Sequence record: PV764603.1
Direction: 5' to 3' (one strand)
DNA: 64,000 nt
In this document: positions 3,699-51,577 of the stretch, piece after piece
How the letters are laid out: each line of letters starts with the position of its first letter
How positions within the stretch are numbered: the first letter of the stretch is position 1
Notes under the pieces: model-generated
Seen by the model: only the letters and a program-made list of their open reading frames with translations
Databases searched by the model: none
What the model was told of the DNA's origin: nothing
Translations under genes and position numbers: made by a program

Positions 3699-4058
3699 CT
3701 ATACCTTATTTACAGTATCCGAGCTACCCATTTGAGCGAAAGCGGAACGCCAACTATCCATGCGTGCCTGCTTTTCTGGATCAAGGGGCAGGCTGTGATA
3801 GAAGGGGTCATGGTCCTTGACCGTCCTCCCCGTGATGGTCAGCATGGTCACGTCGTTCGACCGCACCGCACAAGAGCGCAGGCAACCGGGACATATGTGA
3901 ACGTACTCCTGCCCGTGAGGCACATACAGCATCATCGGCGGTTCATGCTCAGGATGCTGGCACGGCTTCCACGCTTCCTGCACGGGGCGCATGTGGGATT
4001 GGATTTTCTCTTCCAGTTCAGAGAAGTCCGTCTTGATGGTAAGCTGTTGCTTGTTCAT
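3699..4058 (-). CDS. hypothetical protein with Cys motifs (CxH...CxxC)
   Basis: Start MNKQQL at 4058 in ATGA overlap with upstream stop; PCQHPEH and CPGC motifs. Confidence 0.65.
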   Translation of the reverse strand: MNKQQLTIKTDFSELEEKIQSHMRPVQEAWKPCQHPEHEPPMMLYVPHGQEYVHICPGCLRSCAVRSNDVTMLTITGRTVKDHDPFYHSLPLDPEKQARMDSWRSAFAQMGSSDTVNKV

Positions 4059-4261
4059 TGCTCGATCATCCCAAGTTCTTGGGCCCGAAGAAGAGCCACG
4101 TGTTTCGTGTTGGCTTCCCACAGGATCGAATCGGTCCGATGCTTGGCCACGTCGGGGTCATGGTTGAACTCGTTCATCAACGCCTGACCATAGCGCTGAT
4201 GCTGCGGCTTGGTGCCGAAGAACTTCTTGTCGAAAGCGACCAGTGCGTTTGCGGAAATCAC
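4055..4261 (-). CDS. small hypothetical protein
   Basis: GTG start at 4261 in GTGA overlap, GGAGG RBS. Confidence 0.6.
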   Translation of the reverse strand: MISANALVAFDKKFFGTKPQHQRYGQALMNEFNHDPDVAKHRTDSILWEANTKHVALLRAQELGMIEQ

Positions 4262-4620
4262 TTTGCCTCCATAGCATCGGCGAGGGTCAGGGTTGCGACA
4301 TAGGGGACCGCAACCGTGGACATTGCGATGAACTCCCAATCACCCATCGGATCAGGCGGTACGAAATGCGCGTCCTTGACCTGAACTCCCTTGCTTTCCA
4401 GATAGCGGAGCACTTCGTTGCGCCAGTCTTCATTTGCCATCCACTCCCACCCACCTAGGTCCGTATTGCGACGGGGCAGGCGATAGAAGCGTACCACGCG
4501 ATCCTGCTGTGCAGCTTCGGCAACCAGCGAGACGAAACGCTCGGCTGCCTCGAAGCCAGTCTCAGTAGGCACAGCACGGCCGATGATGGGAAGGGAGCGA
4601 AGGGTGGCGATCAGTTTCAT
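4258..4620 (-). CDS. hypothetical protein (120 aa)
   Basis: Coupled ORF with GGAGA RBS. Confidence 0.65.
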   Translation of the reverse strand: MKLIATLRSLPIIGRAVPTETGFEAAERFVSLVAEAAQQDRVVRFYRLPRRNTDLGGWEWMANEDWRNEVLRYLESKGVQVKDAHFVPPDPMGDWEFIAMSTVAVPYVATLTLADAMEAK

Positions 4621-4825
4621 TCGGTTCTCCTTGATCGGGCTCAGGGCCCGACAATTCCTGAGTCAGTAGATTGGCCAGCGCGGCCATGTGTTGTTGAATG
4701 ATGCTTTGTTGCTCACGTTTCTGCTCGGTAGGAGAAAGAGCGGACAACTCGATCCGCTTCTTCCAGAGCGCCGCGTTACACTCACGTGCAACTCGACCAA
4801 CGTGTTCCCGCGTTTTCTTATTCAC
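4562..4825 (-). CDS. hypothetical protein (87 aa)
   Basis: GTG start in GTGA overlap; 3-prime end overlaps the next gene by about 60 nt. Confidence 0.5.
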   Translation of the reverse strand: MNKKTREHVGRVARECNAALWKKRIELSALSPTEQKREQQSIIQQHMAALANLLTQELSGPEPDQGEPNETDRHPSLPSHHRPCCAY

Positions 4826-5076
4826 TTTGCGCGTCTGCGCCTCCGTGCTAGCCGGGCATTCCTATAGTGCTGATAACCCGGAATCAAAACAAAGGGTATT
4901 GCGACGATGAAGCCTCCCGCCAGAAGCAGCAGGAGGGCAACACCTAGGACCGTGATGTGGCCCTTCATGCCAGTGGCGATCCACATTCCTACCAACCCAA
5001 TACCAAGGAAGGCGTACAACGTGACGAGGCTGTTAACCCCGCGTGCTTCATGCAACAACAGGAATCGCAGGAACAT
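4822..5076 (-). CDS. small two-TM membrane protein with basic tail
   Basis: Two hydrophobic helices, C-terminal RRRRAK. Confidence 0.6.
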   Translation of the reverse strand: MFLRFLLLHEARGVNSLVTLYAFLGIGLVGMWIATGMKGHITVLGVALLLLLAGGFIVAIPFVLIPGYQHYRNARLARRRRRAK

Positions 5077-5085
5077 AACCGCTCC

Positions 5086-5361
5086 TTACATTTGAATGGT
5101 GGCCTCGCCGTAGTGGCGACCACGCACCGGGAAATTACTGACGCCAGTGACGCCAATACTCTTGAGGACAACGCTGATGCGTCCCGCTTCTGCCGGGGTC
5201 AGCTTGGTAGCTGCCAGCAGCTTAGTCATTTCCGGCGACTGGAAATGGTGACTCAGGCCATACTTCGGATCGTCACGCAACGCGATGGCTGCACGTTGCA
5301 GACTGAGGGCGTTGGCTTTGTGCAGGGGATTGATACCCACCGCGTTGACGGTCTTGCTCAT
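5086..5361 (-). CDS. hypothetical protein (about 91 aa)
   Basis: ATG at 5361 (MSKTVN) after a GGAG RBS. Confidence 0.6.
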   Translation of the reverse strand: MSKTVNAVGINPLHKANALSLQRAAIALRDDPKYGLSHHFQSPEMTKLLAATKLTPAEAGRISVVLKSIGVTGVSNFPVRGRHYGEATIQM

Positions 5362-5378
5362 TCGTCGAACTACTCCGG

Positions 5379-5894
5379 TTAGTTGAGCGCGAGGTCGCGT
5401 TCTTTGGTCTTGTATGCGCACATGATTGCACGCGTGTTCATGTAGTCAGGATCGGACATCTGCTCACCAGTCGTCTGACCGTTCCACATAATGTCGAAGA
5501 TGCAGCCGCAGAAGATGTTCGGCATCGTGCGAGCTTCTACCAGCACTTCCTCATCATCGAAGCCCATGCCTTCCGACGCCTTCAAGTCAGGGACGCACTG
5601 TGCAATGAAGTGCGCCCGACGTTCGTCTTTCGACGGTGCCACGAACTCGGGCAGCGGCTTGCGCGGCGTACCTTCTTGGATGGATTTCTCAATGTCCTCC
5701 ATGAGGACTTCGGAGGTCGTCTTCTCCGTGACCCCTTGCGGCGGCTTGGACTCGATGGTCGGAGGGGCGGAAGGGATGGCGCTGGCGGACGGAGGCTGCG
5801 GCCCGAAGAAGTACAGGGCAGCCAGCACGATGACAGCGATCAGGGGAGGGTAAACGAGCCAGCCCGGCGGCTGGAACTTGGACTTCTTTTCCAT
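5379..5894 (-). CDS. membrane-anchored exported protein
   Basis: N-terminal TM helix, Pro-rich linker, Cys-containing C-terminal domain. Confidence 0.65.
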   Translation of the reverse strand: MEKKSKFQPPGWLVYPPLIAVIVLAALYFFGPQPPSASAIPSAPPTIESKPPQGVTEKTTSEVLMEDIEKSIQEGTPRKPLPEFVAPSKDERRAHFIAQCVPDLKASEGMGFDDEEVLVEARTMPNIFCGCIFDIMWNGQTTGEQMSDPDYMNTRAIMCAYKTKERDLALN

Positions 5895-5934
5895 GACAGA
5901 TTCCTTTTGGTTGGCGACCTATGAAATTAGGTCA

Positions 5935-6420
5935 TTACGTGATTTCGAGGCCAAGGCAAGCGAAGGTCAACTCACCGATGAATTTACCGCCTGCACACTC
6001 CAGTCGGACGAAAGAGCCTAGCGGCACCATCTTGGACCGAGCGTATGCCTTCTGTTCAGCGAGATACAGGACACCAACGACACCGTTCTTGTAGTCCGAA
6101 CGGGCGGAGGAAGACAGATCGGAAATGTAGAACGTGGTGCTACCGTCCTTGTTATCGGTGACGCGATCCAGCACGCCTGCGATCACCAGCTGCTGGTTCT
6201 CGAATTCGCCGAGGCGGTGGGGTTCATACACCCGAGCTTGGTAGATGCCAAGCGGCAGGGTTTCCTTGAACCCCTTGGCATTCCATTCGGCCCTGCTGAT
6301 GATGGTGTTGACCTCGTTGTCATTGGAAGCGGCTTGGCCACTCCCCGAACACGCCGCGAACAGCGCGGTCATGGAGGCGATGACGACGGCACGGAACGAA
6401 GCGCTCAGATACTTGTGCAT
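5935..6420 (-). CDS. lipoprotein, possibly OB-fold (tRNA_anti-like)
   Basis: Start MHKYLS at 6420; lipobox LFAAC; beta-rich body. Confidence 0.65.
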   Translation of the reverse strand: MHKYLSASFRAVVIASMTALFAACSGSGQAASNDNEVNTIISRAEWNAKGFKETLPLGIYQARVYEPHRLGEFENQQLVIAGVLDRVTDNKDGSTTFYISDLSSSARSDYKNGVVGVLYLAEQKAYARSKMVPLGSFVRLECAGGKFIGELTFACLGLEIT

Positions 6421-6443
6421 GGTGAACTTCCTTGATGATTGAG

Positions 6444-6845
6444 TTAGTGCTTGCAAGAACAGGAGTTGTTGTGTCGGTGTACGTGCCACGCACGCATGTT
6501 GACGATGTGCGCAATGATGAGTGCTACACCGAACACTACCATTGGGATCGCGTGCAGCCATTCGGACTGGTCAAACCAGTCGTGCCAGATGATTGAGGCA
6601 CTCATGGCAACCGCAGCGAGGAACATCCACTTCCACGAATGCGGATCACGATGACGCCATGTGCCAATCGCTAGCGTGGCGGCAGCGAACGCAAACGTAC
6701 CGAGCAGCAGGTAGGTGTGGATGATTTCTTCGCCTTGGACGAATCCAAAGAAGGAAACGCCGAAGAACGCGAGGACAGGAACAGCGGCGCAGTGCACAGC
6801 GCACAGAGCCGATGCAGAGATACCGAGGCGGTCAAGAATTTTCAT
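6444..6845 (-). CDS. MerC-family membrane protein (metal-transporter-like)
   Basis: LDRLGISASALCAVHC motif, four TM segments, His/Cys-rich C-terminus HVHRHNNSCSCKH. Confidence 0.8.
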   Translation of the reverse strand: MKILDRLGISASALCAVHCAAVPVLAFFGVSFFGFVQGEEIIHTYLLLGTFAFAAATLAIGTWRHRDPHSWKWMFLAAVAMSASIIWHDWFDQSEWLHAIPMVVFGVALIIAHIVNMRAWHVHRHNNSCSCKH

Positions 6846-6846
6846 G

Positions 6847-7242
6847 TTAGGCCCTCAGAGCGAAGTTGTCGTCGTGAGCGCAGTCACCGATTTCTTCCTC
6901 GTAGAAGCGAAGGCCCTTGGCAGTCAGCTTGTAGTACACGTCGGTACCACGGCGAGTCTCGATCAGCACCGAACGGAACAGGCCCTGACGAAGTGCCCAC
7001 GCCATCGTGTCGGTGTTGATCGCGTCGCCAACATTGAGGATACGTGTGGGCCGACCATCTTCCAGCATGCCGATGCGGTAGCTGTAGATCGGACGTTCAA
7101 TGGGCCAGCCGCCCTTGGTGTGACCAATCACCTCGTTGCGTTCCAGCTGCGGGAACAGGATGCGTTGCGCAGTGTTGACCATGATGGAAGACAGCACAGC
7201 GGTGATGGCGGCGGTGGATTCTGCGGCAGTGCGACGATTCAT
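6847..7242 (-). CDS. hypothetical protein, possibly winged-helix-like C-terminus
   Basis: ORF; ending YYKLTAKGLRFYEE resembles a wHTH wing/helix (weak). Confidence 0.55.
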   Translation of the reverse strand: MNRRTAAESTAAITAVLSSIMVNTAQRILFPQLERNEVIGHTKGGWPIERPIYSYRIGMLEDGRPTRILNVGDAINTDTMAWALRQGLFRSVLIETRRGTDVYYKLTAKGLRFYEEEIGDCAHDDNFALRA

Positions 7243-36263: not shown

Positions 36264-37391
36264 ATGCTCAAGTATGACAACGGGCTGGAATTGGACGTTA
36301 CCATTGGTGGCGTCCAGCTTCCTGACAATGAGTTCTCGTTTCACCACCTGTCCCTAGTCAGTGACACTCGGTATTTCTTGCCGATGATGTTCATGCAGTT
36401 CGCTGACCAAGGCGACATTCTTCGGAAGGCTGGCGTTACCCTGTTTGACGCCGTACCCATTGTCATTAGCTTGGGCACTGGCGATCAGAAAAGGAACTAC
36501 GAGTTCCGCCTCCACCGTCCTGAGCAAGTCACCAGCGGCAACCTGACCATCTACAAAATGAGCGGGTATCTAGATGCCCCCAAGTACCTAGCTGAGTCTC
36601 AGAACATTGGCTACACGGGTACTAGCTCTGAAATCATCAGTCAAATCGGTGAACGTAGCGGCCTCACGCCACAGGTTGAGGATACCACCGACAACCAACG
36701 ATGGTGGCAGGCCAACCGCCGCAATGCTGAGTTCGTTCGCTACATGGCCCAGCATGGATACAAGTCAGATGATTCCCTCATGTGTACGGGTGTGCGCTTC
36801 GACCGCTCCTTGCGATACATGGACCTGAACGCCATCGAGCCGCGAGATATGTGGCTGAGTTACACAAAGATGGACCAAAACGTCGTTACAATCGTTGACC
36901 ACCGATTTAACGATCCTATGGGTGGGAATAATTTGATTAGGGGATACAGGAGTCGCACGGTAGATCAGAAGGTCAACACTCCTGACACCAACTACAACGA
37001 CACCACCATCAATCCCCGTGCTTCTACCGTGAGCATGAACCTGGACCTACAATCGCAGATTCAGCGAGGCAAGGTCGAGTTCTCACCGCTGTACGCTCCG
37101 GGTCAGGTGCACGATAACTGGGCCAAGGCCCGCCACCAAAACCTGCGCGGTCGCTACCTCAACAACTCGATCTGCGTTGCGCTGACCACTAACCAATCTA
37201 ATCTGGACCTGTTTGATAGCGTCAAGATCGACAGTAGCTTGTCGATCCGAGACAACACTATCGGTGACGGCCAGAACAACAGCCGGGAAGGTCAGTACAT
37301 CGTGGCAGGCAAGGAAATCATGCTTGTCGGTCGCAACTACGGCGAGAAGATCAAACTGATGCGCGGCGGTATGAACGGAGAGAGTCAATGA
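36264..37391 (+). CDS. baseplate hub protein (gp27/gpD-like)
   Basis: 375 aa between the gp53-like and spike genes; GYTGTSSEIISQI, EGQYIVAG motifs. Confidence 0.7.
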   Translation: MLKYDNGLELDVTIGGVQLPDNEFSFHHLSLVSDTRYFLPMMFMQFADQGDILRKAGVTLFDAVPIVISLGTGDQKRNYEFRLHRPEQVTSGNLTIYKMSGYLDAPKYLAESQNIGYTGTSSEIISQIGERSGLTPQVEDTTDNQRWWQANRRNAEFVRYMAQHGYKSDDSLMCTGVRFDRSLRYMDLNAIEPRDMWLSYTKMDQNVVTIVDHRFNDPMGGNNLIRGYRSRTVDQKVNTPDTNYNDTTINPRASTVSMNLDLQSQIQRGKVEFSPLYAPGQVHDNWAKARHQNLRGRYLNNSICVALTTNQSNLDLFDSVKIDSSLSIRDNTIGDGQNNSREGQYIVAGKEIMLVGRNYGEKIKLMRGGMNGESQ

Positions 37392-38125
37392 GTATCGGTA
37401 TGGGCGTCCGTGAATCGGACAGCTACAAGGGCATTATTTTCTATGGCAAGGTAGTGGACAACAATGACCCCGAACAGCTACGGCGTGTACGTGTCCATAT
37501 CCCCGAGGTCTACGGTGATACCCCTCCCGAGGAATTGCCGTGGGCCTTCCCCAAATGTCCTCCTAGCGGCACTGGCCAAAGTAGCACCTTCGGTAGCTAC
37601 GGTGTGTTGGACGTAGACAGCGAAGTATGGGTGGAGTTCCAGCAAGGCGATCCCCACTTCCCTATGGTGATTGGCGTAGCCTTGCGCGCCGACCTTCGGA
37701 AGCAGACTGAGCTAGTCAACTATCCCCACCGCTACGGCCTTGACGATTCCAAGGGTAACTGGATCATCGTTGACAAGCTGACAGGCGACGTGGAGATTGG
37801 CCACTTCTCTGATACCCGTGTTCGCATCGAGCCTAACGGCAACCTGCACATCACTTCGGTAGCCAATCAAACGATCACGGTTGAACAGAATCAAGAGACC
37901 GAAATCAAGGGCAACGCTACAGTGCAGGTGAAAGGTAACGTCAACGTCACCGTGAACGGCAATGCGGAAATGAAGGTCGATGGGGCTATGAAGGCTAACA
38001 TCGGTCAGAACCTCCAAGCTACTGTGGGTGGTAGTGCCACTGCCCAGGTTACTGGTCCTGCAACTATCAATTCAGCAGTCAAGATTTCGCTCAACGCACC
38101 AACGGTAAGTATCAACGGAGCATAA
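37388..38125 (+). CDS. central spike protein (gp5 OB-fold / gpV-like)
   Basis: GKVVDNNDPEQLRRVRVHIP, VWVEFQQGDPHFP, C-terminal beta-helix repeats (VKGNVNVTVNGN). Confidence 0.9.
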   Translation: MSIGMGVRESDSYKGIIFYGKVVDNNDPEQLRRVRVHIPEVYGDTPPEELPWAFPKCPPSGTGQSSTFGSYGVLDVDSEVWVEFQQGDPHFPMVIGVALRADLRKQTELVNYPHRYGLDDSKGNWIIVDKLTGDVEIGHFSDTRVRIEPNGNLHITSVANQTITVEQNQETEIKGNATVQVKGNVNVTVNGNAEMKVDGAMKANIGQNLQATVGGSATAQVTGPATINSAVKISLNAPTVSINGA

Positions 38126-38126
38126 G

Positions 38127-39059
38127 ATGGGAACGATCACCATTTCAGTGACAGAGCCTTTGCCTACGTTCGACAGTCTGTATCAGGCAATGCTCCCGAA
38201 TCTGACGTTCCCGCCAACCGGGTTCCAGTGGCCTCCCGCCCTCCCCGGCATCCCTACCATGTTCCCTTCTATCAGCTGCCCTAACATGAGTGGCGTCATG
38301 GCAATGGGCCAGCTGATGACCGAACAGCTGCTTACGTCTGCGTTCATGATGATTAAGCCTATCTCGGAATTCCTAGGCTTGGCAATGTCTGCCATTCCCA
38401 AGATTCCCATCCTGAACATTGGCGTAGACCAGCTGCTAACTATGTCGGGTGACGATTTGATCGCGGCAGTAAAAGGCGCAATGCCTTCGCTACCTAATCT
38501 CTATTTCTCTCTCGACATACCGGACATCAACATCGTGCAGTGGCTGACGCAGCTGAAGTCTAGCTATCTAATGTCGCTAGCTGGATACTTGCAAAACATC
38601 ATCAAGCAGGTGACAGACAAGATCAAAATTCCGGGCATGCCCACGTTGCCTACCATCCCCACGATGGAGGACGTGAAGCAAATGCTGATAGATCAGATTC
38701 CTCCTCCGATCAATGACCTTCGCAACGTTGACCTCAACGCGCTGTTGGCCAACATCAGCATCCCAGGCATCCCCTTCGATTTCTCGTTGCCATCGCCTTT
38801 TATCCCCAACATTTCGATGCCTGAGATTGATTTCAACGAAATGATTTCGGGGCTGTACAATAGCATCGTCATGATGCCGATGAAGACAATGCAGGACTTC
38901 ATCATGGACAAACTAAGTAGTGTGATTTCCCTCCAGCTGCCTACGCTGGTTTTGGTCATTCCCACTATTGAAATCCCCATTCCGGAAATCCCCATCCCTG
39001 TTATCCCGCCACTGCCTAGCATCCCGGACCTGCCTCCGCTCACCATTCGAGGCCCTTGA
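38127..39059 (+). CDS. Pro/Ile/Met/Leu-rich hypothetical protein
   Basis: 310 aa with many xP repeats (IPTIEIPIPEIPIPVIPPLPSIPDLPP). Confidence 0.75.
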   Translation: MGTITISVTEPLPTFDSLYQAMLPNLTFPPTGFQWPPALPGIPTMFPSISCPNMSGVMAMGQLMTEQLLTSAFMMIKPISEFLGLAMSAIPKIPILNIGVDQLLTMSGDDLIAAVKGAMPSLPNLYFSLDIPDINIVQWLTQLKSSYLMSLAGYLQNIIKQVTDKIKIPGMPTLPTIPTMEDVKQMLIDQIPPPINDLRNVDLNALLANISIPGIPFDFSLPSPFIPNISMPEIDFNEMISGLYNSIVMMPMKTMQDFIMDKLSSVISLQLPTLVLVIPTIEIPIPEIPIPVIPPLPSIPDLPPLTIRGP

Positions 39060-39060
39060 A

Positions 39061-40002
39061 ATGCCTGTATCTAATCCACCTACCTTGTTGAGTGTCATTG
39101 CAGAGTTCGGAGGCCCTAACAATCTTGGGGCCTATTACCGCAAAGGTCCATACGTACCTGACGGTCCTCCGCAGAATGCCAACATCAGTGATACGCCGGG
39201 CGGTCTTCGTCTCAGTCAGTTTGCGGGTGCGGTCAAGTACAATCTCAGTGCGTCCCTGAATCGCACGACCGCCAACACCAGTGGTAGTGGCAACAGCCAG
39301 TCGGGACGTGTCCTAACTCCACAGCTGATTGTTTACCCCGTTAACGGCAGCGGCAACTACAGCTACTACTGGAACTACACCGCAGGCGTCCCTGTTAGCG
39401 GAAATACCAGTAGTACGTTCCAGCTGTACGCTGATCTCAACAATGGTCAGAACATTTCTGGCAACGGTAACTGCGTGGTTACCGATAACGTCACTGGTCA
39501 GAATGCGATCCCTAGCTTTACGTTCTACCTAAGCTGGACGTATGAACGCCCACCCACCTGTGTTGTCATGGAAGCATACCTGCACGATGGAAAGCAGGCA
39601 GGCATGTACAACTCCAACGATCCTCTGCTGTTGGTCGATCCATACGCAAGGACTTCGGAGACGCTGAACATCGTAGATGCGCAGACCTTCACCCGAGAGT
39701 GTGTGACCTTGGTTACTGCCAATGGCTCACGCCTAACGTGCTCCACCACTGCACCTATTCCAGTCAAAGCCGACTCGGAAACGCTGGTTCGTGCGGTGGA
39801 TGCTCTAGGCCACCACGTTGCTACTACCACACGCCCTAACGACGTGATCCCATCGGTCACTTGGGATAAGGTAGTGCGTGTGCTGCCTGCTGGTGAGCGT
39901 GCTGTCCGCAATATCTACATCTACGACAAGTGCTTCTGGGCTTCGGATGACAATCGTTCGTTCATCCTCCATCACAACACGACTGGTAAGCAGATCATAT
40001 GA
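39061..40002 (+). CDS. short fibre-like virion protein with C-terminal Hint domain
   Basis: N-terminal module shared with 40615; Hint from CVVME (39559) to ILHHN (39978) followed by TTGKQII. Confidence 0.75.
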   Translation: MPVSNPPTLLSVIAEFGGPNNLGAYYRKGPYVPDGPPQNANISDTPGGLRLSQFAGAVKYNLSASLNRTTANTSGSGNSQSGRVLTPQLIVYPVNGSGNYSYYWNYTAGVPVSGNTSSTFQLYADLNNGQNISGNGNCVVTDNVTGQNAIPSFTFYLSWTYERPPTCVVMEAYLHDGKQAGMYNSNDPLLLVDPYARTSETLNIVDAQTFTRECVTLVTANGSRLTCSTTAPIPVKADSETLVRAVDALGHHVATTTRPNDVIPSVTWDKVVRVLPAGERAVRNIYIYDKCFWASDDNRSFILHHNTTGKQII

Positions 40003-40604
40003 TCGTCAACAAAGAACCACGCACCGCTACTCCGATGAATTGGTTGCCTACGTACTACCTCAGTCGGATGTTTAACGCAGAAGAGTGCGCCACCATCATC
40101 AAGGAGTCAGAGGACTCCGGACTGTTTGTGCAAGGCCGCACCATTGGCGACAATAACGTGACTGTAACAGAGCAAGGCCGTCAGGTGGCCATTATCCGAC
40201 TGGCTGGAGGTACGCTGTACGAAATGATGCGCCAACGGATACTGGAACGGCTGCCTGACCTAAACTCCTGCTATCAGTTTGAACTGTTCGGCGCAGATGA
40301 AGTCTTCAAGGAAATCCATATCCTGAAGTACGTGGAAGGTAATTTCCACGGTGAACATTTGGACCTCGCCGGTTACGAGGAAATGTGCAACCGGAAGCTC
40401 AGCCTCATCGTCCAGTTGAATCCGGATTACGAGGGCGGTGAATTAGTCCTCTACAACTCTTACCCCGAGAAACCTCTGACCAATAGCAAGCAGGCTGGCG
40501 ACGCAGTGGTATTCCCCGCATGGATGCCGCACGAAGTAAGACCTGTTGACTACGGGACTAGGTACGTTCTTGTGGTTTGGTTGCGAGGCCCTAAATTTAG
40601 ATAG
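39999..40604 (+). CDS. 2OG-Fe(II) oxygenase (prolyl 4-hydroxylase/PKHD-like)
   Basis: LKYVEGNFHGEHLD (HxD), RKLSLIVQLN, YEGGEL, GDAVVFPAWMPHEVRPV..GTRYVLVVW. Confidence 0.93.
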   Translation: MIVNKEPRTATPMNWLPTYYLSRMFNAEECATIIKESEDSGLFVQGRTIGDNNVTVTEQGRQVAIIRLAGGTLYEMMRQRILERLPDLNSCYQFELFGADEVFKEIHILKYVEGNFHGEHLDLAGYEEMCNRKLSLIVQLNPDYEGGELVLYNSYPEKPLTNSKQAGDAVVFPAWMPHEVRPVDYGTRYVLVVWLRGPKFR

Positions 40605-40614
40605 GGAGGTACTC

Positions 40615-41202
40615 ATGGCCGTATCAAACCCACCAACACTGGTGAGCGTGCGTAACGAATTCGGTGGCAACGGAAATCTCCGTGCCTACACACGAGGCGG
40701 TGGCCTTGTTCCAGATGGGCCTGCGCAGAATGCGAACATCAGCAAAACTCCGGACGGTTTGCGGCTTAGTCAATTTGCAGGAGCAACTAAAATCACTGCA
40801 CAGTTGACCGACATTTATGCGCAGCAGTCCTACTACGGACAATCGGGTCAAGACAACACTGCTTCTGCCACCATCCAGTTTAGTACCGATGGCAACATCT
40901 ACTACACATGGGGTATGGGAGCTTTGCAGACGTACCGATGGTTGGCTGGCGGTAATGCAAGTGATTTTGACGTAGAAGGATTTAATCAGCAGATCGCAGG
41001 TAACGGTCAAACCTCGGGCACGATGAATCGTCAGAATTTGGGTGGTTCTCCCCGATGGTCATGTTCCGCTGCAACCCGATTTGGTTTTGTTGATTCTTCC
41101 ATGTCATTTGGCTGCCGAATCTACCAAGCGGGTACTGGTAACGTTATCGCTACAGCGAATTTCAGTATTTATGCCGCCGCCTCAGATGGTAGCATCGGAT
41201 AG
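40615..41202 (+). CDS. short fibre-like virion protein, paralogue of 39061 N-terminus
   Basis: 44 of the first 59 aa identical to the 39061 protein; Gly/Asn/Ser-rich beta body. Confidence 0.75.
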   Translation: MAVSNPPTLVSVRNEFGGNGNLRAYTRGGGLVPDGPAQNANISKTPDGLRLSQFAGATKITAQLTDIYAQQSYYGQSGQDNTASATIQFSTDGNIYYTWGMGALQTYRWLAGGNASDFDVEGFNQQIAGNGQTSGTMNRQNLGGSPRWSCSAATRFGFVDSSMSFGCRIYQAGTGNVIATANFSIYAAASDGSIG

Positions 41203-41257
41203 CAACTCCATCTTCTAGTAACAACCAAAACGTTTGACACAACAAGGGAGAAGAAAC

Positions 41258-41935
41258 ATGTTCCAAGAAAGGGACCAAACTACAGCCAAATGGAATCCCC
41301 TCTGCCACGAACAGGTCAACTTGATTAACTCTTCGCTGATCGCGCGCCTCAAGGCGAAGGCAGATGAGTATCCGGTTAACCCTTACGGTTGTGGATGGGA
41401 TAGTGGCGTTCCACTGGACCTGACTGCACCGACGGCCAGTGACGCGTCGCCAGAAGCTGTGTTGATTCACGATACCCGAACGCTCATCGCAGAATGCGTC
41501 CATCGCCTATCGGGCTTCTATCCATTCGATTTGTATTTCAAGGATGCGGCCTTTGTTGTTCCTGCACCGCAACCTGCTTCGGTACGCTTGGTGCGACTCG
41601 CTATGGGTGCGAAGCTTAATCCGCCCCACGCTGGTACGGCGGTTGCTCCCGGCGCCACGAATCGCATTGATCTGAATACGCATAGTCAGGCTCATCAGAA
41701 GATTCATATGATGATCCCGCTCTCTGCTTACGAAGGTAACGACGTGTTCTTCCCCTTCTTCGATCCGAACTTGCAGGAATGGAAAGACGTGTCGCCCACC
41801 ATCACTAACGCACGGGCTGACTGGACAGGCATCACGTTGTCATGGCCTGCGTGGCGGTTGTGTAGGTTCAGTCCCGTCGAGGACGGCGAAGCCTACCTCC
41901 TGCTAGTCACGTTGTACGGACCTCGCTTCCAGTAA
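41258..41935 (+). CDS. putative Asp/Asn beta-hydroxylase-like (DSBH) protein
   Basis: VRLVRLAMGAKLNPPH...KIHMMIPL resembles the R.L.pG..I.PH...R.H.PL pattern of that family; second iron ligand unclear. Confidence 0.45.
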   Translation: MFQERDQTTAKWNPLCHEQVNLINSSLIARLKAKADEYPVNPYGCGWDSGVPLDLTAPTASDASPEAVLIHDTRTLIAECVHRLSGFYPFDLYFKDAAFVVPAPQPASVRLVRLAMGAKLNPPHAGTAVAPGATNRIDLNTHSQAHQKIHMMIPLSAYEGNDVFFPFFDPNLQEWKDVSPTITNARADWTGITLSWPAWRLCRFSPVEDGEAYLLLVTLYGPRFQ

Positions 41936-41961
41936 GTGCCCACATCTAATTCGGAACCAAC

Positions 41962-42366
41962 ATGGCAACCACCAACAACATCCTGTTTAGTGACTTCAAC
42001 ACGCTAGTCGGGTTGAATAACAAGCAAGCCATCGTCATCAATGATGATGCAGTTGCCAATGTGGTGCTCAACATTGTTCTGATCCAGAAGCGCAGCCGTA
42101 AGTTTCGGATTGGGTATGGAGCATCAAGTCACTTCTTCCTGCAAAAGCAGGTGACTGCTGAGAACGCGGAGAAGTACAGGATGACCCTCTACCAAGACCT
42201 GACCAAATGGGCCGGGTCTGTAGCCAAGTTTGATATGGCGGGCATCCAAGTGAAGCCTCTCCAGAATTACGACGGTTACGGAGTGGTCATCCTGTACAAG
42301 TCCAACCTTTCGGGTTACTACAATCAGGTTTCAGTCCAGCTGCCGTCCACCTCGGTGGCACGCTAA
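41962..42366 (+). CDS. baseplate wedge protein (gp25-like)
   Basis: AIVINDDAVANVVLNIVLIQKRSRKFRIGYGA; precedes the gp6-like gene. Confidence 0.75.
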   Translation: MATTNNILFSDFNTLVGLNNKQAIVINDDAVANVVLNIVLIQKRSRKFRIGYGASSHFFLQKQVTAENAEKYRMTLYQDLTKWAGSVAKFDMAGIQVKPLQNYDGYGVVILYKSNLSGYYNQVSVQLPSTSVAR

Positions 42367-42549
42367 TACCGAAAATAGGGCCAAAATAGGCCCACAGCAC
42401 CCTACCCACAGGGCGCCAAATTTAGAGGCTCCAGCTTCCATCTACGACCCCAATCCTTGCGTCAAAACGCATAGTTGGGGCGTAGATTTTGGCTACATTT
42501 TCCACTCCCCAACCCTCATTTTCCTATGGCCACTGACCGGAATTCAACC

Positions 42550-44307
42550 ATGACAACTGTAACCGCGTTGTCCAATATCCGCCCTGACTTCGATGACATT
42601 GCAGCACAGCTGGGATCGAGTCTGACGCGCAAGGCGAACTGGGCTCCGCTGCTTCCTACTCAGACTGCAAGCCTCTTGATTGAAGGCGTGGCCGCCGCCA
42701 CTGCGTTCCTGCAAACCGGTGTGCAGAACAGCTTTGAAGAAACGTTCCCTCAGACCGCCCGTATGCCTTCGAGCCTGCGGGCGTCTGCGCGTCGGCTCGG
42801 TGTCCGTCTGACGCGCAAGTCCCCTGCACAGACTCGGGTACGGCTCACGCGAGCCACCGCAGCCACGTCCGTCCTGATCCCTGAGTTCTCGGCCTTCCAA
42901 GCGCCGGGTGTGTCTCTGTTCAACCGCTCTGCCATACTGTTCCCCGTCGGTACCCTCTCCGCTGAATTCGACTTGTACGAAGGCTTTATCACTCAGGTTT
43001 CGTACACGGGTCAAGGTGCTGACAGTCAGATGATCGTTGTATCTGTCCCCGGCTTCACCATCAGCAACATGGACGTGCGGGTCACTGTCAGTGGCCGTCC
43101 GCTGCAAGTGGTGACTGATGGCATCTGGCACTACCCCATCACGAACAGTGGCGATCCTAACTACGTGGTATCGGACAACACGCTGCCTACGGGCGAGCTT
43201 CTGCTTGAGTTCGGTAACACTCAGTTCGGCATGATCCCTCAGCGTGGTGCGCAGATTCTTGTGTCCTATGCTGTGACCAATGGTACCTCCGGCAACAACG
43301 TACAGTTTGAGAATCAGCGCATCACGTACTCGGCCAACGGTGTTGAGTTCACTGGCAGCGCGCTTACTCCACTCACCGGAGGTACTGACGAACTTGACGC
43401 AGAGCAGTACCGCGATAGTCCGTTGATCTACGCGTCCTACGAGCGCGCGGTTGCTATTCCAGACATGCCTGCTATTGCTACGAAGTATCCCGGCGTTGTC
43501 GATGCCATCTTCCTTGGTCAGAAGGACATTGCTCCGAATCTCAAGGAATTCATGAACGTTGTCTACACCTACGTTCTGATGGATACGGGTTCTCAGATTT
43601 CTGCTACGCAGTACACGGACTTCCTCAAGTGGTGGCAGCCTCGCTCGATGCCCCTTGAGTACGTCCGCCAAACCGCCAAGCAAATTGCAGTAGACGTTGC
43701 GGGCACCATCTACATCACTGGTCAGGGCGATCCGGATTCCATCTTGGCCAAGGCGCGCGCAGCAGTTGCCAAACTGTTCACTGCACGCCAAGGTTACTTG
43801 GGTCGCGATCTGTACGTGGACGACCTTATTGACTCCATCCGTACTTCGGACCCTTACGTTGACCACGTTACCCTGACTTCACCCACCGCTGACGTTATCT
43901 GTAAGATCAACGCACCGCAGGCCCCTACTGTTACTCCGGCTACTGGCGGTACGCTCCCCAACGGTACGTACATCTATTCGGTGTCTGCTGTCTCCAATCT
44001 CAGCCCTGTGCAAGAAACGTTCGCTTCGGTGAATGGTGCGGTGACGCTGACGGGAACGAACAACGCCGCACGTATCAAGTGGAATGCAGTGGCAGGTGCT
44101 GTGCAATACAAGGTGTACGGGCGCACTGCTTCCCAAGAAATGTTCCTGCTTGCCACGGTCAGCGCATCTTCTGCGCTTGAATTCTTGGACACGGGTTCTG
44201 TTACTACTGGCGCTGCTGTCAACAAGATCAACACTGCGGGTATCTCTTACGTTACCCTCAACAATACGAACTTGCAGGTGGCGTTCACTGATCGAGTAGG
44301 TGTCTGA
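42550..44307 (+). CDS. baseplate wedge protein (gp6 / baseplate J-like) with FN3-like insertion
   Basis: PDFDDIAAQL, FEETFPQTARMPSSL, LTGGTDE, YERAVAIPD motifs. Confidence 0.88.
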   Translation: MTTVTALSNIRPDFDDIAAQLGSSLTRKANWAPLLPTQTASLLIEGVAAATAFLQTGVQNSFEETFPQTARMPSSLRASARRLGVRLTRKSPAQTRVRLTRATAATSVLIPEFSAFQAPGVSLFNRSAILFPVGTLSAEFDLYEGFITQVSYTGQGADSQMIVVSVPGFTISNMDVRVTVSGRPLQVVTDGIWHYPITNSGDPNYVVSDNTLPTGELLLEFGNTQFGMIPQRGAQILVSYAVTNGTSGNNVQFENQRITYSANGVEFTGSALTPLTGGTDELDAEQYRDSPLIYASYERAVAIPDMPAIATKYPGVVDAIFLGQKDIAPNLKEFMNVVYTYVLMDTGSQISATQYTDFLKWWQPRSMPLEYVRQTAKQIAVDVAGTIYITGQGDPDSILAKARAAVAKLFTARQGYLGRDLYVDDLIDSIRTSDPYVDHVTLTSPTADVICKINAPQAPTVTPATGGTLPNGTYIYSVSAVSNLSPVQETFASVNGAVTLTGTNNAARIKWNAVAGAVQYKVYGRTASQEMFLLATVSASSALEFLDTGSVTTGAAVNKINTAGISYVTLNNTNLQVAFTDRVGV

Positions 44308-47438: not shown

Positions 47439-49724
47439 ATGATTACCCATCAGGATACACTGTTCTCCAACATCCTATACGGAAATAATTGGAGTGCAGC
47501 TACCTACCAAGCCGCAAATCGGTTCACCATCCAAGGTGACAAGCGAACTTCGTATGAGGTAGGTACCCAGGTTCAGATTCTCACGTCCGCCGTAGCTACC
47601 ATGCAGTACAGCTACGTCAGTGCAGTCACATTCGCATCCAACGTCACTACGGTGACAGTCAGCGACGGCCTGTTCGCCTCGGGTCAGAAGATCAATGTTC
47701 GTGCGTCGCCGTTTGGCGCCAACAACATGCCCCTCGGCCGACGCTTCAAAGAAATCAGCGTGTTCGGTGCGAACGGTCTAACGATCTCGAATGCGAGTCC
47801 GAAGTTCACCTTGTTCGTGGAGGGCGTTGGCGCAGGCAAAGTCAACACGTTCACTTTCCAGCCGGGCTCTGACGGTATCTCGTTCAAGGTGGGACGTGAT
47901 GCGATTGGTCTCGATGCCATGCGCATCGACGCCACTTCGACTGCCATCACCAAGGTGACGTTGTTCTCGCCCCTGACCTTTGGCGCGACGTATACGGGCG
48001 CCCTGACTTCGCTGACCGACCTTCTGACGATTGGTCAATACGCACTGACCTATTCGGCTACGGGTTCTTCGACCGGCAGCAATCGTCTGTATATCTCCGG
48101 CCCTAATGGCGGCGAGTTCACCGTTGGTCCTACCAACGATGCTCAGGTATTCCGTCGTATTCGACTGCGTGCTACTGACGTTGTGGTCGAGAACAATCCC
48201 GGCGGTTCCTCGCAAGCAGGCTCGATCTGGCATAGCCTCAACTTCGATCCTGACACCCGTGTTACCAAGGGTCAGAATGGTTCTTGGATGGATTCGGCTT
48301 ACACTGCGATCAACAACCTTAACAACGCTCAGGGGTATTTCAACCAGTGGGCATCGGGCGCCGCACAGGCTCCTGTTGCAGGTTCGACGGGTGTTGTGCA
48401 AACCATGCACAGTGCGGGTGGCAACAACTTTAACCCTGTGGCTGGTGCTTCGCTGGTGCAGACGGCTTATGTCACCAATGGCACCGCACCTGCCCTGTAT
48501 GTGCGACGCAACGTAGGTGCTTCGGGTTGGTCTGCATGGACTAAGCTGTATACCCAAGCAGATTTCTCGCTTGGCGATTACGTCAAGATCGCAGGCGGTG
48601 ATACCATCCAGTCCCCGATCACTGTACGTACTGCCTTGTCCGTTGGCACGACTGCGGATGCAACGTCCACCCTGAACTTCGGTACCTCGGCCAGTCCCAA
48701 CGGTCCTGCTGCTACCATTTCTGTTACGGGCGGCGCAGCGACCACGGGTCGTGGTGCAATGACTATCAACGCGCAGTCCATCGCGCTGCCTGCACTGAAC
48801 GTCAACGGTACGATGAACGTTTCGGGCGCTGCTTCGATGGCGGGCCCACTGACCATCACTACTGGCTCCATACTGCTGGGTAACGGCACGTATGGGGAAT
48901 CGCGTATTAGCAATACCTTCGACGACTGGTATTTGTATTCCAGTCCTACGGGACTTGGCTGGTACAGTATCAGTAAGGGTAGTGCTTTCTCACTGGACAA
49001 GAACAGCAAGGCGTTCACGTTCAATGGTGCGGGTACCATCAACGGTCAGACTACCATCAATGGTGGTCTGAACGTGGCGAGCGGTAGCGGCATCATCACT
49101 TCGGGTAACGTTGTTGGCGCTAACGGCAACTTCTCCAATGACGTGTTTGCCCCGGGTGCTTTCCGTGGCGCTCGCCTGCACATCTATGCAAACTGTATTG
49201 CCTATGGCCAGGGTTTCCTCCCTAGTTGGAACGACTACGGTGATGGCGCAACGGTCCTGACTAACGCACGCGGCGGTGGTACGGGCGGCTTCAAGTTCCG
49301 TCAGATGAACAGTGATGGCGGTGGTCAGGTCTTCCTTGCCTTCATCAACCCGAACGGTACCATCGGTTCGGCGTCGGACGAACGCATGAAGGAATTCGGT
49401 AAGGTACTCGACCTGTCTGACGCTCTTCGGTTCATCCGTGAGCAGCGAGTCAAGCACGTCAAGTGGAAGCACACCGGCGAGGAGGATATTGCGTTTGGTG
49501 CGCAGAGCATCTTCAAGACCACTAGATTCCTAGCCCACTACGACAAGGGTGCTGACTTCTGGCAGCTGTACTACCCGAAGGTAGCTCTGTACCATCACGA
49601 AGCTCTCTTCCATATCCTTGAAGTGCAGAACAATCACGAAGCCGACATTCAGATTCTGATTCGCAAGAACGAAAATCTGGAAGAGGAAGTGAAGCAGCTG
49701 CGCGAACGGTTGGATTCTCTCTAA
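47439..49724 (+). CDS. long tail fibre with knob domain and C-terminal intramolecular chaperone (peptidase S74)
   Basis: SASDERMKE cleavage motif, IAFGAQ, terminal coiled coil LEEEVKQLRERL; knob-like LYVRRN..GWSAW. Confidence 0.9.
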   Translation: MITHQDTLFSNILYGNNWSAATYQAANRFTIQGDKRTSYEVGTQVQILTSAVATMQYSYVSAVTFASNVTTVTVSDGLFASGQKINVRASPFGANNMPLGRRFKEISVFGANGLTISNASPKFTLFVEGVGAGKVNTFTFQPGSDGISFKVGRDAIGLDAMRIDATSTAITKVTLFSPLTFGATYTGALTSLTDLLTIGQYALTYSATGSSTGSNRLYISGPNGGEFTVGPTNDAQVFRRIRLRATDVVVENNPGGSSQAGSIWHSLNFDPDTRVTKGQNGSWMDSAYTAINNLNNAQGYFNQWASGAAQAPVAGSTGVVQTMHSAGGNNFNPVAGASLVQTAYVTNGTAPALYVRRNVGASGWSAWTKLYTQADFSLGDYVKIAGGDTIQSPITVRTALSVGTTADATSTLNFGTSASPNGPAATISVTGGAATTGRGAMTINAQSIALPALNVNGTMNVSGAASMAGPLTITTGSILLGNGTYGESRISNTFDDWYLYSSPTGLGWYSISKGSAFSLDKNSKAFTFNGAGTINGQTTINGGLNVASGSGIITSGNVVGANGNFSNDVFAPGAFRGARLHIYANCIAYGQGFLPSWNDYGDGATVLTNARGGGTGGFKFRQMNSDGGGQVFLAFINPNGTIGSASDERMKEFGKVLDLSDALRFIREQRVKHVKWKHTGEEDIAFGAQSIFKTTRFLAHYDKGADFWQLYYPKVALYHHEALFHILEVQNNHEADIQILIRKNENLEEEVKQLRERLDSL

Positions 49725-49766: not shown

Positions 49767-51158
49767 ATGTGGATCACCCCTCAGAATCAAACTCTTGATG
49801 ACACGTTCGATCCATACTTTCCGGGTACAACTCGGTGGTATGGTTACACCGGCATCCTCATCAACAACACGCAAGACACCTACGATCGGTACGCTCCTTT
49901 GCAGTATGGCAGGCAAGCTCCATCCACGGCGATCCTTGCGCAGAATCAGGTAGACCTGAATCAGATTTACGCAGCCCGAGGTACAGCAGGCTACCTGCAA
50001 GGTATCTCTATCCCAAATTGCTACGTGGGCTGCTCTGGCGTTACCATCAACGATCTTCTCGCTGCTCGATGCACCATCATCATCAAGAACGACGGTACGT
50101 GGCAGCAGTGGTTCTATTCCACCAACTACAAGACGGATAGCCCGGGTGCATATGCACCTCCTAATCGTGGCATCCCTCGAACCGAAACCAACTTCAGCAA
50201 CGGACGCATGAACGCCGCCGGTAACTGGGCACAGATTCCGTTCGCTGGTGTGGGTAACAACTACGAGACTTTCTGCCACGCTCCTTGGGCCCCATACGAA
50301 AGCAAGAACCCACCTGATCTAGATTGGGGTACTGCCGATCACTATAATCGGTATGATGCTGCACTCATCAACTATATCTGGCACAACTTTAAGGGCCAAG
50401 GACAGTTCGGTAGTGCTAGTGATCCATACGTGGTGCAGAACACTACACAGAACCCCAACGAAGACATTCCTGACGGTCGGGTATACCGCATCGACCGCGA
50501 CATTCGGTTCACCCTTGGCTTGACTGCACAGGGACGCAACAACGTTCGTTGGAACTACGACGACAACGGCGCTCTGTCATGGTACAACCGAGCCAACTTT
50601 TCGGTGTACATTCAGACACCCGGTGGTGGTCAGCGTGTAGGTGCCACGTGCTTGATGGCCAATGAGATTCGATGGAACGCATGGAATTGGACGGGTGGTA
50701 GCGTCGGCGGCGGTGGTGGCGGTGGTGGCGGTGGTTGCGTTGCTGCTACCAGCTATGTTGACTTCCAAAAGACCGCAGGCACTGTTGAGGCAGGCGACTA
50801 CCTCATGGGTATGACGGATGATCTGCAATTTATGGAGCTACACGTCCTGAGTGTGCGTCGTCAAGTGCAACCGTGTGTCCGACTCTACTCAAAGAGTGGC
50901 GTCACCCTTGTGTGCTCAAAGTCCACGCCGCTGACCCTACAGAACGGAGATTGCGTGCTGGCAGGCGAAGCACGAGCAGGTATCAAGCTTCCGGTACGAT
51001 TCTTCGCGGCTGATCCTGAGTGGGAAACCATCGTCAAGATCGAGGAGGTTGGCAACCGGGAAGTGATGCTCATCAACTGCGGTGGACAGAGCTATGCTGC
51101 CGGTGAGTTGCCGGGCCGCTATATCTACACCCACAACAACAACCAGCAGAAGATGTGA
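49767..51158 (+). CDS. fibre-tip/adhesin-like protein with Gly10 linker and C-terminal Hint domain
   Basis: Trp/Tyr/Asn-rich body; G10 then CVAATS (50736) ... YIYTHN (51137). Confidence 0.8.
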   Translation: MWITPQNQTLDDTFDPYFPGTTRWYGYTGILINNTQDTYDRYAPLQYGRQAPSTAILAQNQVDLNQIYAARGTAGYLQGISIPNCYVGCSGVTINDLLAARCTIIIKNDGTWQQWFYSTNYKTDSPGAYAPPNRGIPRTETNFSNGRMNAAGNWAQIPFAGVGNNYETFCHAPWAPYESKNPPDLDWGTADHYNRYDAALINYIWHNFKGQGQFGSASDPYVVQNTTQNPNEDIPDGRVYRIDRDIRFTLGLTAQGRNNVRWNYDDNGALSWYNRANFSVYIQTPGGGQRVGATCLMANEIRWNAWNWTGGSVGGGGGGGGGGCVAATSYVDFQKTAGTVEAGDYLMGMTDDLQFMELHVLSVRRQVQPCVRLYSKSGVTLVCSKSTPLTLQNGDCVLAGEARAGIKLPVRFFAADPEWETIVKIEEVGNREVMLINCGGQSYAAGELPGRYIYTHNNNQQKM

Positions 51159-51577
51159 TGATTGGTTCTGACCAACTCTCAGAAGTAGGTGTACCTGTCG
51201 GAGAGCTCTCCATTGGGAGGACTCTCGACGTATATGCGGTGGACGATCTACACTCGGTCATCCGCCTGAAAGGAACCGTCTCAAATCGGGTCCTGCGCAG
51301 TGCAGAAGTAGTAACCATCACAACTGCCTCCGGCGCTTCCGTTGTGGTGGCTGCCCAAAGTCGCCTCCCTGTCTATAGCGGACAGACAGCGCTGGCTAAG
51401 AATGTTGGTGCCAACATGATTGCTGTGATGGCCCCTAATGGCGCTTTTCGGTGGGAGCGGGTTGCCACCATCGAGGCTGGTACTGAGGCCGTAGTGGACC
51501 TCAAGTGTGAAGGCTACATAGTAGCCGGTAACGATCCTAAAACCGGGCTAATCTTGGTGTCTGGATCGCTGCCGTGA
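51155..51577 (+). CDS. stand-alone degenerate Hint-like protein
   Basis: Hint-like blocks (VGELSIG, VVTITTASGASVVVAAQSRLP, WERVATIE, VVDLKCE.YIVAG) but no N-terminal Cys/Ser and no terminal HN. Confidence 0.55.
   Translation: MMIGSDQLSEVGVPVGELSIGRTLDVYAVDDLHSVIRLKGTVSNRVLRSAEVVTITTASGASVVVAAQSRLPVYSGQTALAKNVGANMIAVMAPNGAFRWERVATIEAGTEAVVDLKCEGYIVAGNDPKTGLILVSGSLP

Follow-up and report, generated by a model that had tools for sequence, protein, structure and literature searches.

A predicted Hint-ended protein and its neighboring oxygenase in a variable slot of the baseplate operon of Xanthomonas jumbo phage PhiXhv-16

Two small genes in the baseplate operon of the Xanthomonas jumbo phage PhiXhv-16 begin nearly alike, and each is directly followed by an oxygenase-type gene. 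This arrangement raises the question of whether such oxygenases are dedicated to the structural proteins encoded next to them, and whether both of them can still work as enzymes. The four genes, P0001 (gene A), P0002, P0003 (gene B) and P0004, lie in a 64,000-nucleotide stretch of record PV764603.1, here called the window. Its source, PhiXhv-16, is a virulent jumbo myovirus of 229 kb and was recognized by a match at 100% identity (bases 38900-42400). GenBank calls the same genes hypothetical, 2OG-Fe(II) (2-oxoglutarate- and iron-dependent) oxygenase, hypothetical and hypothetical, and the paper on the PhiXhv phages makes no mention of them. A preliminary description of the sequence had proposed that each accessory fiber comes with one dedicated hydroxylase, forming a swappable module.

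We find that proteins with the architecture of P0001 are directly followed by an oxygenase of the P0002 clade in 9/9 independent loci, whereas P0004 has lost its catalytic ligands and an ortholog of P0003 occurs without any oxygenase. The proposal of one hydroxylase per fiber thus stands for the first cassette and falls for the second. The explanation we favor, to which we give an even chance, is that the operon contains a variable slot in which a conserved first cassette has an active oxygenase that matures its partner, and in which the second cassette is an old copy whose oxygenase is non-catalytic.

P0001 and its paired oxygenase

P0001 is composed of a short N-terminal module (N-module), an immunoglobulin-like (Ig-like) part, a predicted intein-like (Hint) domain and a short tail (Table 1). 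The N-module was found in 46 IMG/VR loci, joined to very different C-terminal parts. Distant members match phrog_30374 (function unknown), and some of these distant proteins bear tail-fiber PHROG domains. P0001 itself matches PHROG tail families weakly (E 0.0025-0.01); P0001 and P0003 are small (195-313 aa) and have a common anchor-like N-terminus, and "fiber" is a candidate label for them. Word-index searches with the C-terminal regions of these two proteins returned one or two relatives, and a search of the ESM Atlas gave weak leads and nothing more. The Ig-like part is all-beta at residues 63-161 in the AlphaFold2 (AF2) model, with predicted local distance difference test (pLDDT) scores of 53-79, and residues G96, G98 and Y100 are conserved across 12 homologs.

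The C-terminal 147 residues of P0001 appear intein-like by eye, with a Cys after the Ig-like part and His-His-Asn followed by Thr. Here the AF2 pLDDT is mostly 83-98 over residues 171-300, and >90 over most of them. The best Foldseek matches of the model are mini-inteins (NpuDnaB 4o1r, E=3e-6, target TM 0.76), with a probability of 1.00 for many of them as well as for the Clostridium bacterial intein-like (BIL) domain 2lwy and Hedgehog 1at0. A profile of the Hint members compared with the PDB matched the PhoCDC21-1 intein (8e-4); direct phmmer comparison of the P0001 domain with the PDB returned nothing, and 0/50 members of the family matched the Pfam Hint families. When residues 161-313 were used as a HMMER query, 336 relatives were retrieved at E<=1e-3, in proteins of 150-2300 aa and mostly at the extreme C-terminus. 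The family extends from the Cys to (I/V)-L-H-H-N, followed by 3-20 residues with a Lys, and a poly-Gly linker precedes the Cys in most relatives but not in P0001's own subfamily. Across 150 relatives, C167 is nearly invariant and H305-N306 is conserved. The residue after the Asn (+1) is Thr in P0001 and P0009 and Ala, Leu, Met, Ile or Lys in most relatives; the C-flank has 7 residues, and its Lys is nearly invariant in the Hint subfamily of P0001. Taken with the model, these features suggest that residues 167-306 of P0001 are a Hint-fold domain.

Residues specific to the subfamily were also considered as a possible mark of hydroxylation, but T192, S295 and D297 alone were recovered, which is uninformative. 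Some Hint members (P0012, P0062, P0045, P0017 and P0138) carry two tandem copies of the domain about 5 residues apart (His-His-Asn-Lys-Lys-x-Gly-x-Cys). Elsewhere in the window, a 463-aa protein (49767-51158) ends in Gly10 and a Hint domain of P0001's family (E=5e-31), and the gene overlapping it (51155-51577) encodes a 140-aa stand-alone Hint-like protein that has neither the Cys nor the His-Asn (E=7e-9).

The gene that follows P0001 was described from the outset as a clear 2OG-Fe(II) enzyme, and this identification is borne out. P0002 matches PF13640 at 2.4e-15 (57.7 bits, cut-off 27) and phrog_61 at 4.5e-28, and its sequence neighbors in the PDB are the PKHD hydroxylases PiuC and Sbal_3634 and a prolyl 4-hydroxylase (P4H). 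The expected ligands are present as H120-x-D122, H178 and R188xxxxxW194. H120, D122, H178 and R188 are invariant across 9 homologs of P0002, and the oxygenases of loci L105 and L108 also keep the ligands of the clade. P0002 is thus an intact P4H-type 2OG-Fe(II) oxygenase and is predicted to be active.

Genomic context was surveyed for every available protein with the P0001 architecture (N-module, Ig-like part and Hint domain). The nine paired loci are the window, L006, L053, L054/L107, L056, L057, L105, L106 and L108, so that the synteny survey suggested by the preliminary description upholds the pairing in several genome contexts: the baseplate operon, LucasX-like fiber modules with DUF7941/DUF7208, and a position next to thymidylate synthase. 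Start and stop codons overlap in six of the nine, including the window, where the P0002 start and the P0001 stop share 4 nt (ATGA). In L054/L107, a second N-module/Ig/Hint protein comes after the oxygenase. Against a hidden Markov model (HMM) of the P0002 clade, the paired oxygenases score 1e-63 to 1e-95 (complete genes) and other oxygenases 1e-14 to 1e-27, and the model produced no false matches among the open reading frames (ORFs) in the window and in 57 loci. No 2OG gene was found within 5 kb of Hint-ended loci that lack the N-module (0/44 IMG/VR loci, 409 kb scanned), and one was found within ~3 kb downstream at 8 of the 46 N-module loci, these eight representing roughly four independent lineages.

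A further, independent pairing with a different Hint subtype is suggested by L035 (IMG/VR 3300031602_000003, a 55-kb contig). Positions 3995-6972 of this contig encode, from first to last, a fiber ending in a Peptidase_S74 (S74) domain, a protein with an N-module and a Hint-like end, immediately after it a 449-aa PF13640 P4H-type protein, and a sulfotransferase-like gene product, an array that may be a larger protein-modification cassette. The N-module protein of L035 has no match to Pfam Hint; a related protein in L028 matches PT-HINT at 2.4e-7. Overall, the synteny argues for a real and specific link between protein and oxygenase. The link is closest where the N-module, Ig-like part and Hint domain are all present, and it may concern any part of the protein.

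Several observations weigh against such a link. N-module proteins are found without a nearby oxygenase in LucasX, RTH11, L102 and most of the 46 IMG/VR loci, and the N-module and Ig proteins of LucasX and RTH11 have neither a Hint domain nor an oxygenase. P0147, with an N-module and a Hint domain but no Ig-like part, is followed by an M15 peptidase and has no adjacent oxygenase, and the N-module and Hint protein of L028 also has none beside it. In addition, related cyanophage oxygenases occur in tandem arrays after fiber genes that carry neither a Hint domain nor an N-module, so a shared insertion hot spot may account in part for the proximity of such oxygenases to tail genes.

The oxygenases could be auxiliary genes that are unlinked to their neighbors and are brought together with tail genes by a recombination hot spot; their targets would be host proteins, nucleic acids or 2OG pools, as has been suggested for cyanophage 2OG oxygenases. 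The nearest cultured-phage relatives of P0002 are indeed the multi-copy 2OG-Fe(II) oxygenases of T4-like cyanophages (PHROG 61; 27-40% identity over most of the aligned parts), for which roles in 2OG handling or DNA repair have been proposed (PMC3037559). These are encoded in tandem just after tail-fiber genes, as in S-CAM9 and S-RSM4, and the fibers have Peptidase_S74-type ends and no N-module/Hint partner. It also fits this reading that a bacterial P4H modifies EF-Tu (title of PDB 4iw3) and that the slot is clearly mosaic. However, insertion of unlinked genes agrees poorly with strict adjacency at all nine loci in unrelated neighborhoods, with the overlap in six of them, with the lack of an oxygenase at all 44 Hint-only loci, and with the far higher scores of the linked oxygenases on the clade HMM. 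We therefore consider it unlikely that the oxygenases are unlinked, but give that reading appreciable weight.

The second cassette and the catalytically dead copies

P0001 and P0003 had been described as sharing 44 of their first 59 residues; the count is exact (BLASTP E=4e-26), and an oxygenase-type gene does directly follow each of them, P0002 after P0001 and P0004 after P0003. The C-terminal parts differ as described, but they are not simply unrelated: P0001 has the Ig-like part and the Hint domain, both absent from P0003. P0002 and P0004 are likewise homologous (BLASTP 3e-6 over the C-terminal 160 columns; P0002-clade HMM E=1.3e-5). Since both pairs are homologous, the duplication covers both genes of the cassette and has kept their order. 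A gap of 55 nt separates P0003 from P0004, which has a good ribosome-binding site (Shine-Dalgarno before ATG). No third copy of the N-module was found in the window by tblastn.

At the nucleotide level, the two N-module regions agree at only 64% of positions (114/177). So low a value means that the duplication is old and rules out that the N-module was duplicated or converted recently; the likeness has been kept at the protein level by selection. Two subtypes can be told apart by the motifs Tyr-Tyr-Arg...Pro-Tyr-Val-Pro (Hint type) and Arg-Gly-Gly-Gly-Leu-Val-Pro (P0003 type), and because the subtypes are orthologous across lineages, the N-module paralogs predate these lineages. The ortholog of P0003 (P0161, 64% identity) is in L102, where no oxygenase is present. 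At window position 40748, inside P0003, one high-depth freshwater metagenome contig has an extra G that would shift the frame, and the other three runs do not have it; this +1 insertion after 40748 could be a natural inactivation or an assembly error.

For P0004, the sequence strings quoted in the preliminary description are present (at residues 113 and 148), but the identity proposed for it, an Asp/Asn beta-hydroxylase (Asp_Arg_Hydrox), is ruled out. P0004 matches no Pfam family at E<=1 and no PHROG, and its closest structures are prolyl hydroxylases. In the alignment of the clade its ligands are all replaced: HxD is lost, the distal His is Cys and the 2OG-binding Arg is Ala, and neither HxD nor HxE occurs anywhere in the protein. 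Without these ligands, P0004 cannot work as a hydroxylase. Its AF2 model (mean pLDDT 66.7, predicted template modeling score, pTM, 0.72) gives a Foldseek match of 2e-5 to the Bacillus anthracis P4H and, by VIA, Z=13.0 to the Pseudomonas putida P4H (4j25, 158 residues aligned) and 12.6 to PBCV-1 vCPH, the collagen prolyl hydroxylase of a chlorovirus; prolyl hydroxylases make up the majority of the listed structural matches. P0004 is a pseudo-oxygenase, with a predicted double-stranded beta-helix (DSBH) fold and homology to the P4H/PKHD family. Two points count against the model: it derives from aligned oxygenase homologs, and its mean pLDDT is low.

The 15 nt differences between PhiXhv-15 and PhiXhv-16 within P0004 comprise 11 synonymous and 4 non-synonymous changes, a ratio of non-synonymous to synonymous rates (dN/dS) of ~0.11. 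This points to constraint or purifying selection, although an estimate from so few substitutions weighs little. At 15 listed positions in 41395-41590, all four environmental assemblies share one letter that differs from PhiXhv-16, which may carry a rarer allele patch there. A word-index search for homologs of P0004 returned itself or near-identical proteins alone. In a maximum-likelihood tree of 21 oxygenases, the dead copies are not placed, with open forks and branches of >3 changes/site (P0004, 3.1), and P0004 may or may not have arisen from a P0002-like ancestor inside this lineage.

The content of the slot varies between relatives, in agreement with the earlier suggestion of a swappable module. 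L006, a close relative (neighboring genes 70-88% identical), has cassette 1 only, and the distant relative L102 (39-69% identical) has the P0003 ortholog and, after it, a third protein with an N-module, and lacks both an oxygenase and a Hint domain. PhiXhv-15 has an extra oxygenase-like gene, P0005, which was found in no other phage record. P0005 is related to P0002 (BLASTP 9e-5) and has no counterpart of the Asp, distal His or Arg. The PhiXhv-15 region is a recombination mosaic, since the 310-aa gene upstream differs by 54 nt and gene A is identical.

These dead copies allow a reading in which the DSBH proteins are mainly non-catalytic assembly chaperones or adaptors for N-module proteins, like the tail-fiber assembly proteins encoded just downstream of fibers, and catalysis is dispensable. 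Both P0004 and P0005, which died independently, have retained intact ORFs; P0004 is apparently under purifying selection, and assembly factors are typically encoded right after a structural gene. However, all four residues (His, Asp, His and Arg) are kept by every member of the P0002 clade, in which catalysis is therefore under selection; moreover, the P0003 ortholog has no such partner, and P0005 precedes an N-module gene instead of following one. A mainly non-catalytic role for the whole group has, in our view, a rather small chance of being correct.

Alternatively, cassette 2 could be left over from an old duplication or acquisition and now be decaying, having lost any function. Loss of the catalytic residues of P0004, its very long branch, its lack of relatives outside this phage group, the absence of cassette 2 from L006 and the freshwater contig with the insertion in P0003 are all consistent with decay. 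Set against these, the ORFs of P0003 and P0004 are intact, have good ribosome-binding sites and are conserved in five isolates, most of the environmental assemblies are free of indels here, the dN/dS of P0004 is low, and the P0003 type is retained at 64% identity in a distant lineage. Decay without function is accordingly a poor prospect.

Proposed maturation and comparison with known systems

In the explanation that we favor, an active first cassette beside an old and non-catalytic second one, the slot between the 310-aa protein and the wedge genes would hold small accessory tail or baseplate proteins. The N-module (~60 residues) would most likely anchor these proteins to a common virion partner, while their distal parts differ. 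The Hint domain should remove itself, through a thioester at Cys167 and cyclization of Asn306. P0002, translationally coupled to P0001, would be an active P4H-type 2OG/Fe(II) oxygenase, and from synteny we infer that it most likely hydroxylates a residue of P0001 or its N-module during maturation. Cassette 2 would be an old, diverged copy of cassette 1 in which another distal domain replaces Hint, and P0004 may persist without catalysis, perhaps with a part in binding or assembly. One feature of the Hint family weighs against this scheme: the His of the block-B motif Thr-x-x-His is absent, and the family consensus is Cys-Ser-x-Thr-Ala-Pro-Ile-Pro. Because this canonical residue is missing, we can only infer autoprocessing of P0001. 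It is highly improbable that maturation is a two-step covalent process in which a hydroxyl made by the P4H (on the N-module protein or a baseplate acceptor) or the tail Lys resolves the Hint thioester, stapling the Ig decoration to the virion in a Hedgehog-like transfer, with the dead copies as substrate-holding adaptors.

P0001 has the same predicted fold, N-terminal Cys and C-terminal His-Asn as BIL domains, mini-inteins and Hedgehog Hint domains. Its family differs from these in its place at the extreme C-terminus with a tail of 3-20 residues, in having no block-B His, and in a +1 residue that is usually not Cys, Ser or Thr, though it is Thr in P0001. The Peptidase_S74 intramolecular chaperone of phage fibers and spikes likewise lies at the C-terminal end of tail proteins and removes itself, but its fold and chemistry differ: S74 uses a Ser/Lys dyad, in contrast to the Cys thioester and Asn cyclization of Hint. 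Examples of Peptidase_S74 adjoin N-module genes in L035, L057 and L109. In the window, a 761-aa fiber-like protein (47439-49724) has a C-terminus that is S74-chaperone-like by eye (Ser-Asp-Glu-Arg-Met-Lys), with no Pfam or PHROG match at the thresholds used.

The Pfam domain, HxD...H and 2OG-binding Arg of P0002 are those of viral and bacterial P4Hs (PBCV-1 vCPH, Bacillus anthracis, Pseudomonas putida; PF13640/PKHD), and the P0004 model aligns best to these enzymes (Z 12-13), yet without any ligand. Fixed pairing with a Hint-ended structural protein is a feature of P0002 that was not found for them in the literature searched. That literature (Hint and tail fibers, BIL and phage, P4H and virions, PhiXhv, LucasX proteomics) contained no oxygenase coupled to a Hint-ended tail protein, no description of dead oxygenase paralogs in a baseplate operon and no reported substrate for phage 2OG-Fe(II) oxygenases. 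Such oxygenases are among the commonest unexplained phage genes, with many copies beside tail genes in cyanophages. The constant coupling of the P0002 clade to one defined structural protein provides a concrete and directly testable candidate substrate. The locus also shows that oxygenase paralogs can persist intact yet catalytically dead, and suggests that distal domains in a baseplate slot can be exchanged behind one short N-terminal module that they share as a handle. The dead paralogs and this handle both bear on host-range evolution and on the engineering of Xanthomonas biocontrol phages.

Borders and distribution of the slot

The cassettes were described as lying inside the baseplate operon, and the genes on either side agree with this: a spike gene (PF04717) is found upstream and wedge subunits (phrog_261, phrog_219) downstream (Table 1). 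The 310-aa protein at the left border has no Pfam or PHROG match, and its 307-aa orthologs precede the slot in L006 (70% identity) and L102 (69%). Orthologs of the wedge-like gene at the right border come after the slot in the same two relatives.

Table 1 Features of the baseplate slot of PhiXhv-16 and its borders (window coordinates unless another locus is named)
Feature	Position	Strand	Description
gp5/V-type central spike	37388-38125		PF04717 9.6e-12, Gp5_trimer_C; upstream of slot
Pro/Ile-rich 310-aa protein	38127..39059	+	Conserved left slot border; after spike gene
P0005 (PhiXhv-15)	L002:3178-3810		210-aa oxygenase-like gene; inserted between window 39059 and 39061, before gene A
P0001 (gene A)	39061-40002	+	313 aa; N-module, Ig-like, predicted Hint, 7-residue tail
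Gene A residues 1-59	39061..39237	+	Shared N-terminal module; 44/59 identical to P0003
Gene A residues 60-166	39238..39558	+	Predicted Ig-like beta-sandwich with GGxGxYxYxW motif (AF2 model)
Gene A C167-N306	39559..39978	+	Predicted Hint (intein-like) domain (AF2, Foldseek, profile vs PDB)
Gene A tail and stop	39979..40002	+	7 residues after Asn, beginning Thr-Thr-Gly-Lys
P0002	39999..40604	+	P4H/PKHD-type 2OG-Fe(II) oxygenase; start overlaps gene A stop
P0003 (gene B)	40615..41202	+	195 aa; N-module (40615-40791) and a different ~135-aa beta-rich C-terminal part
P0004	41258..41935	+	Catalytically dead P0002 paralog; predicted P4H-like fold
Baseplate wedge-like protein	41962..42366	+	134 aa; conserved right slot border; phrog_261 baseplate wedge subunit, 1.5e-4
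Baseplate wedge subunit	42526-44307		phrog_219 3e-39; downstream of slot

Over bases 38900-42400, the isolates PhiXhv-12, PhiXhv-15, Ep026 and Ep032 are 99-100% identical to PhiXhv-16. Among environmental assemblies from four studies, three of the four span the stretch as one collinear contig without an indel, the freshwater run covers it with several shorter contigs, and no joint in the stretch was seen in any of the four runs. Near-identical phage DNA was found in runs labeled honey, freshwater, drinking water, sediment and wastewater, from 9 studies, and the PhiXhv-16 phage group is widespread in the environment.

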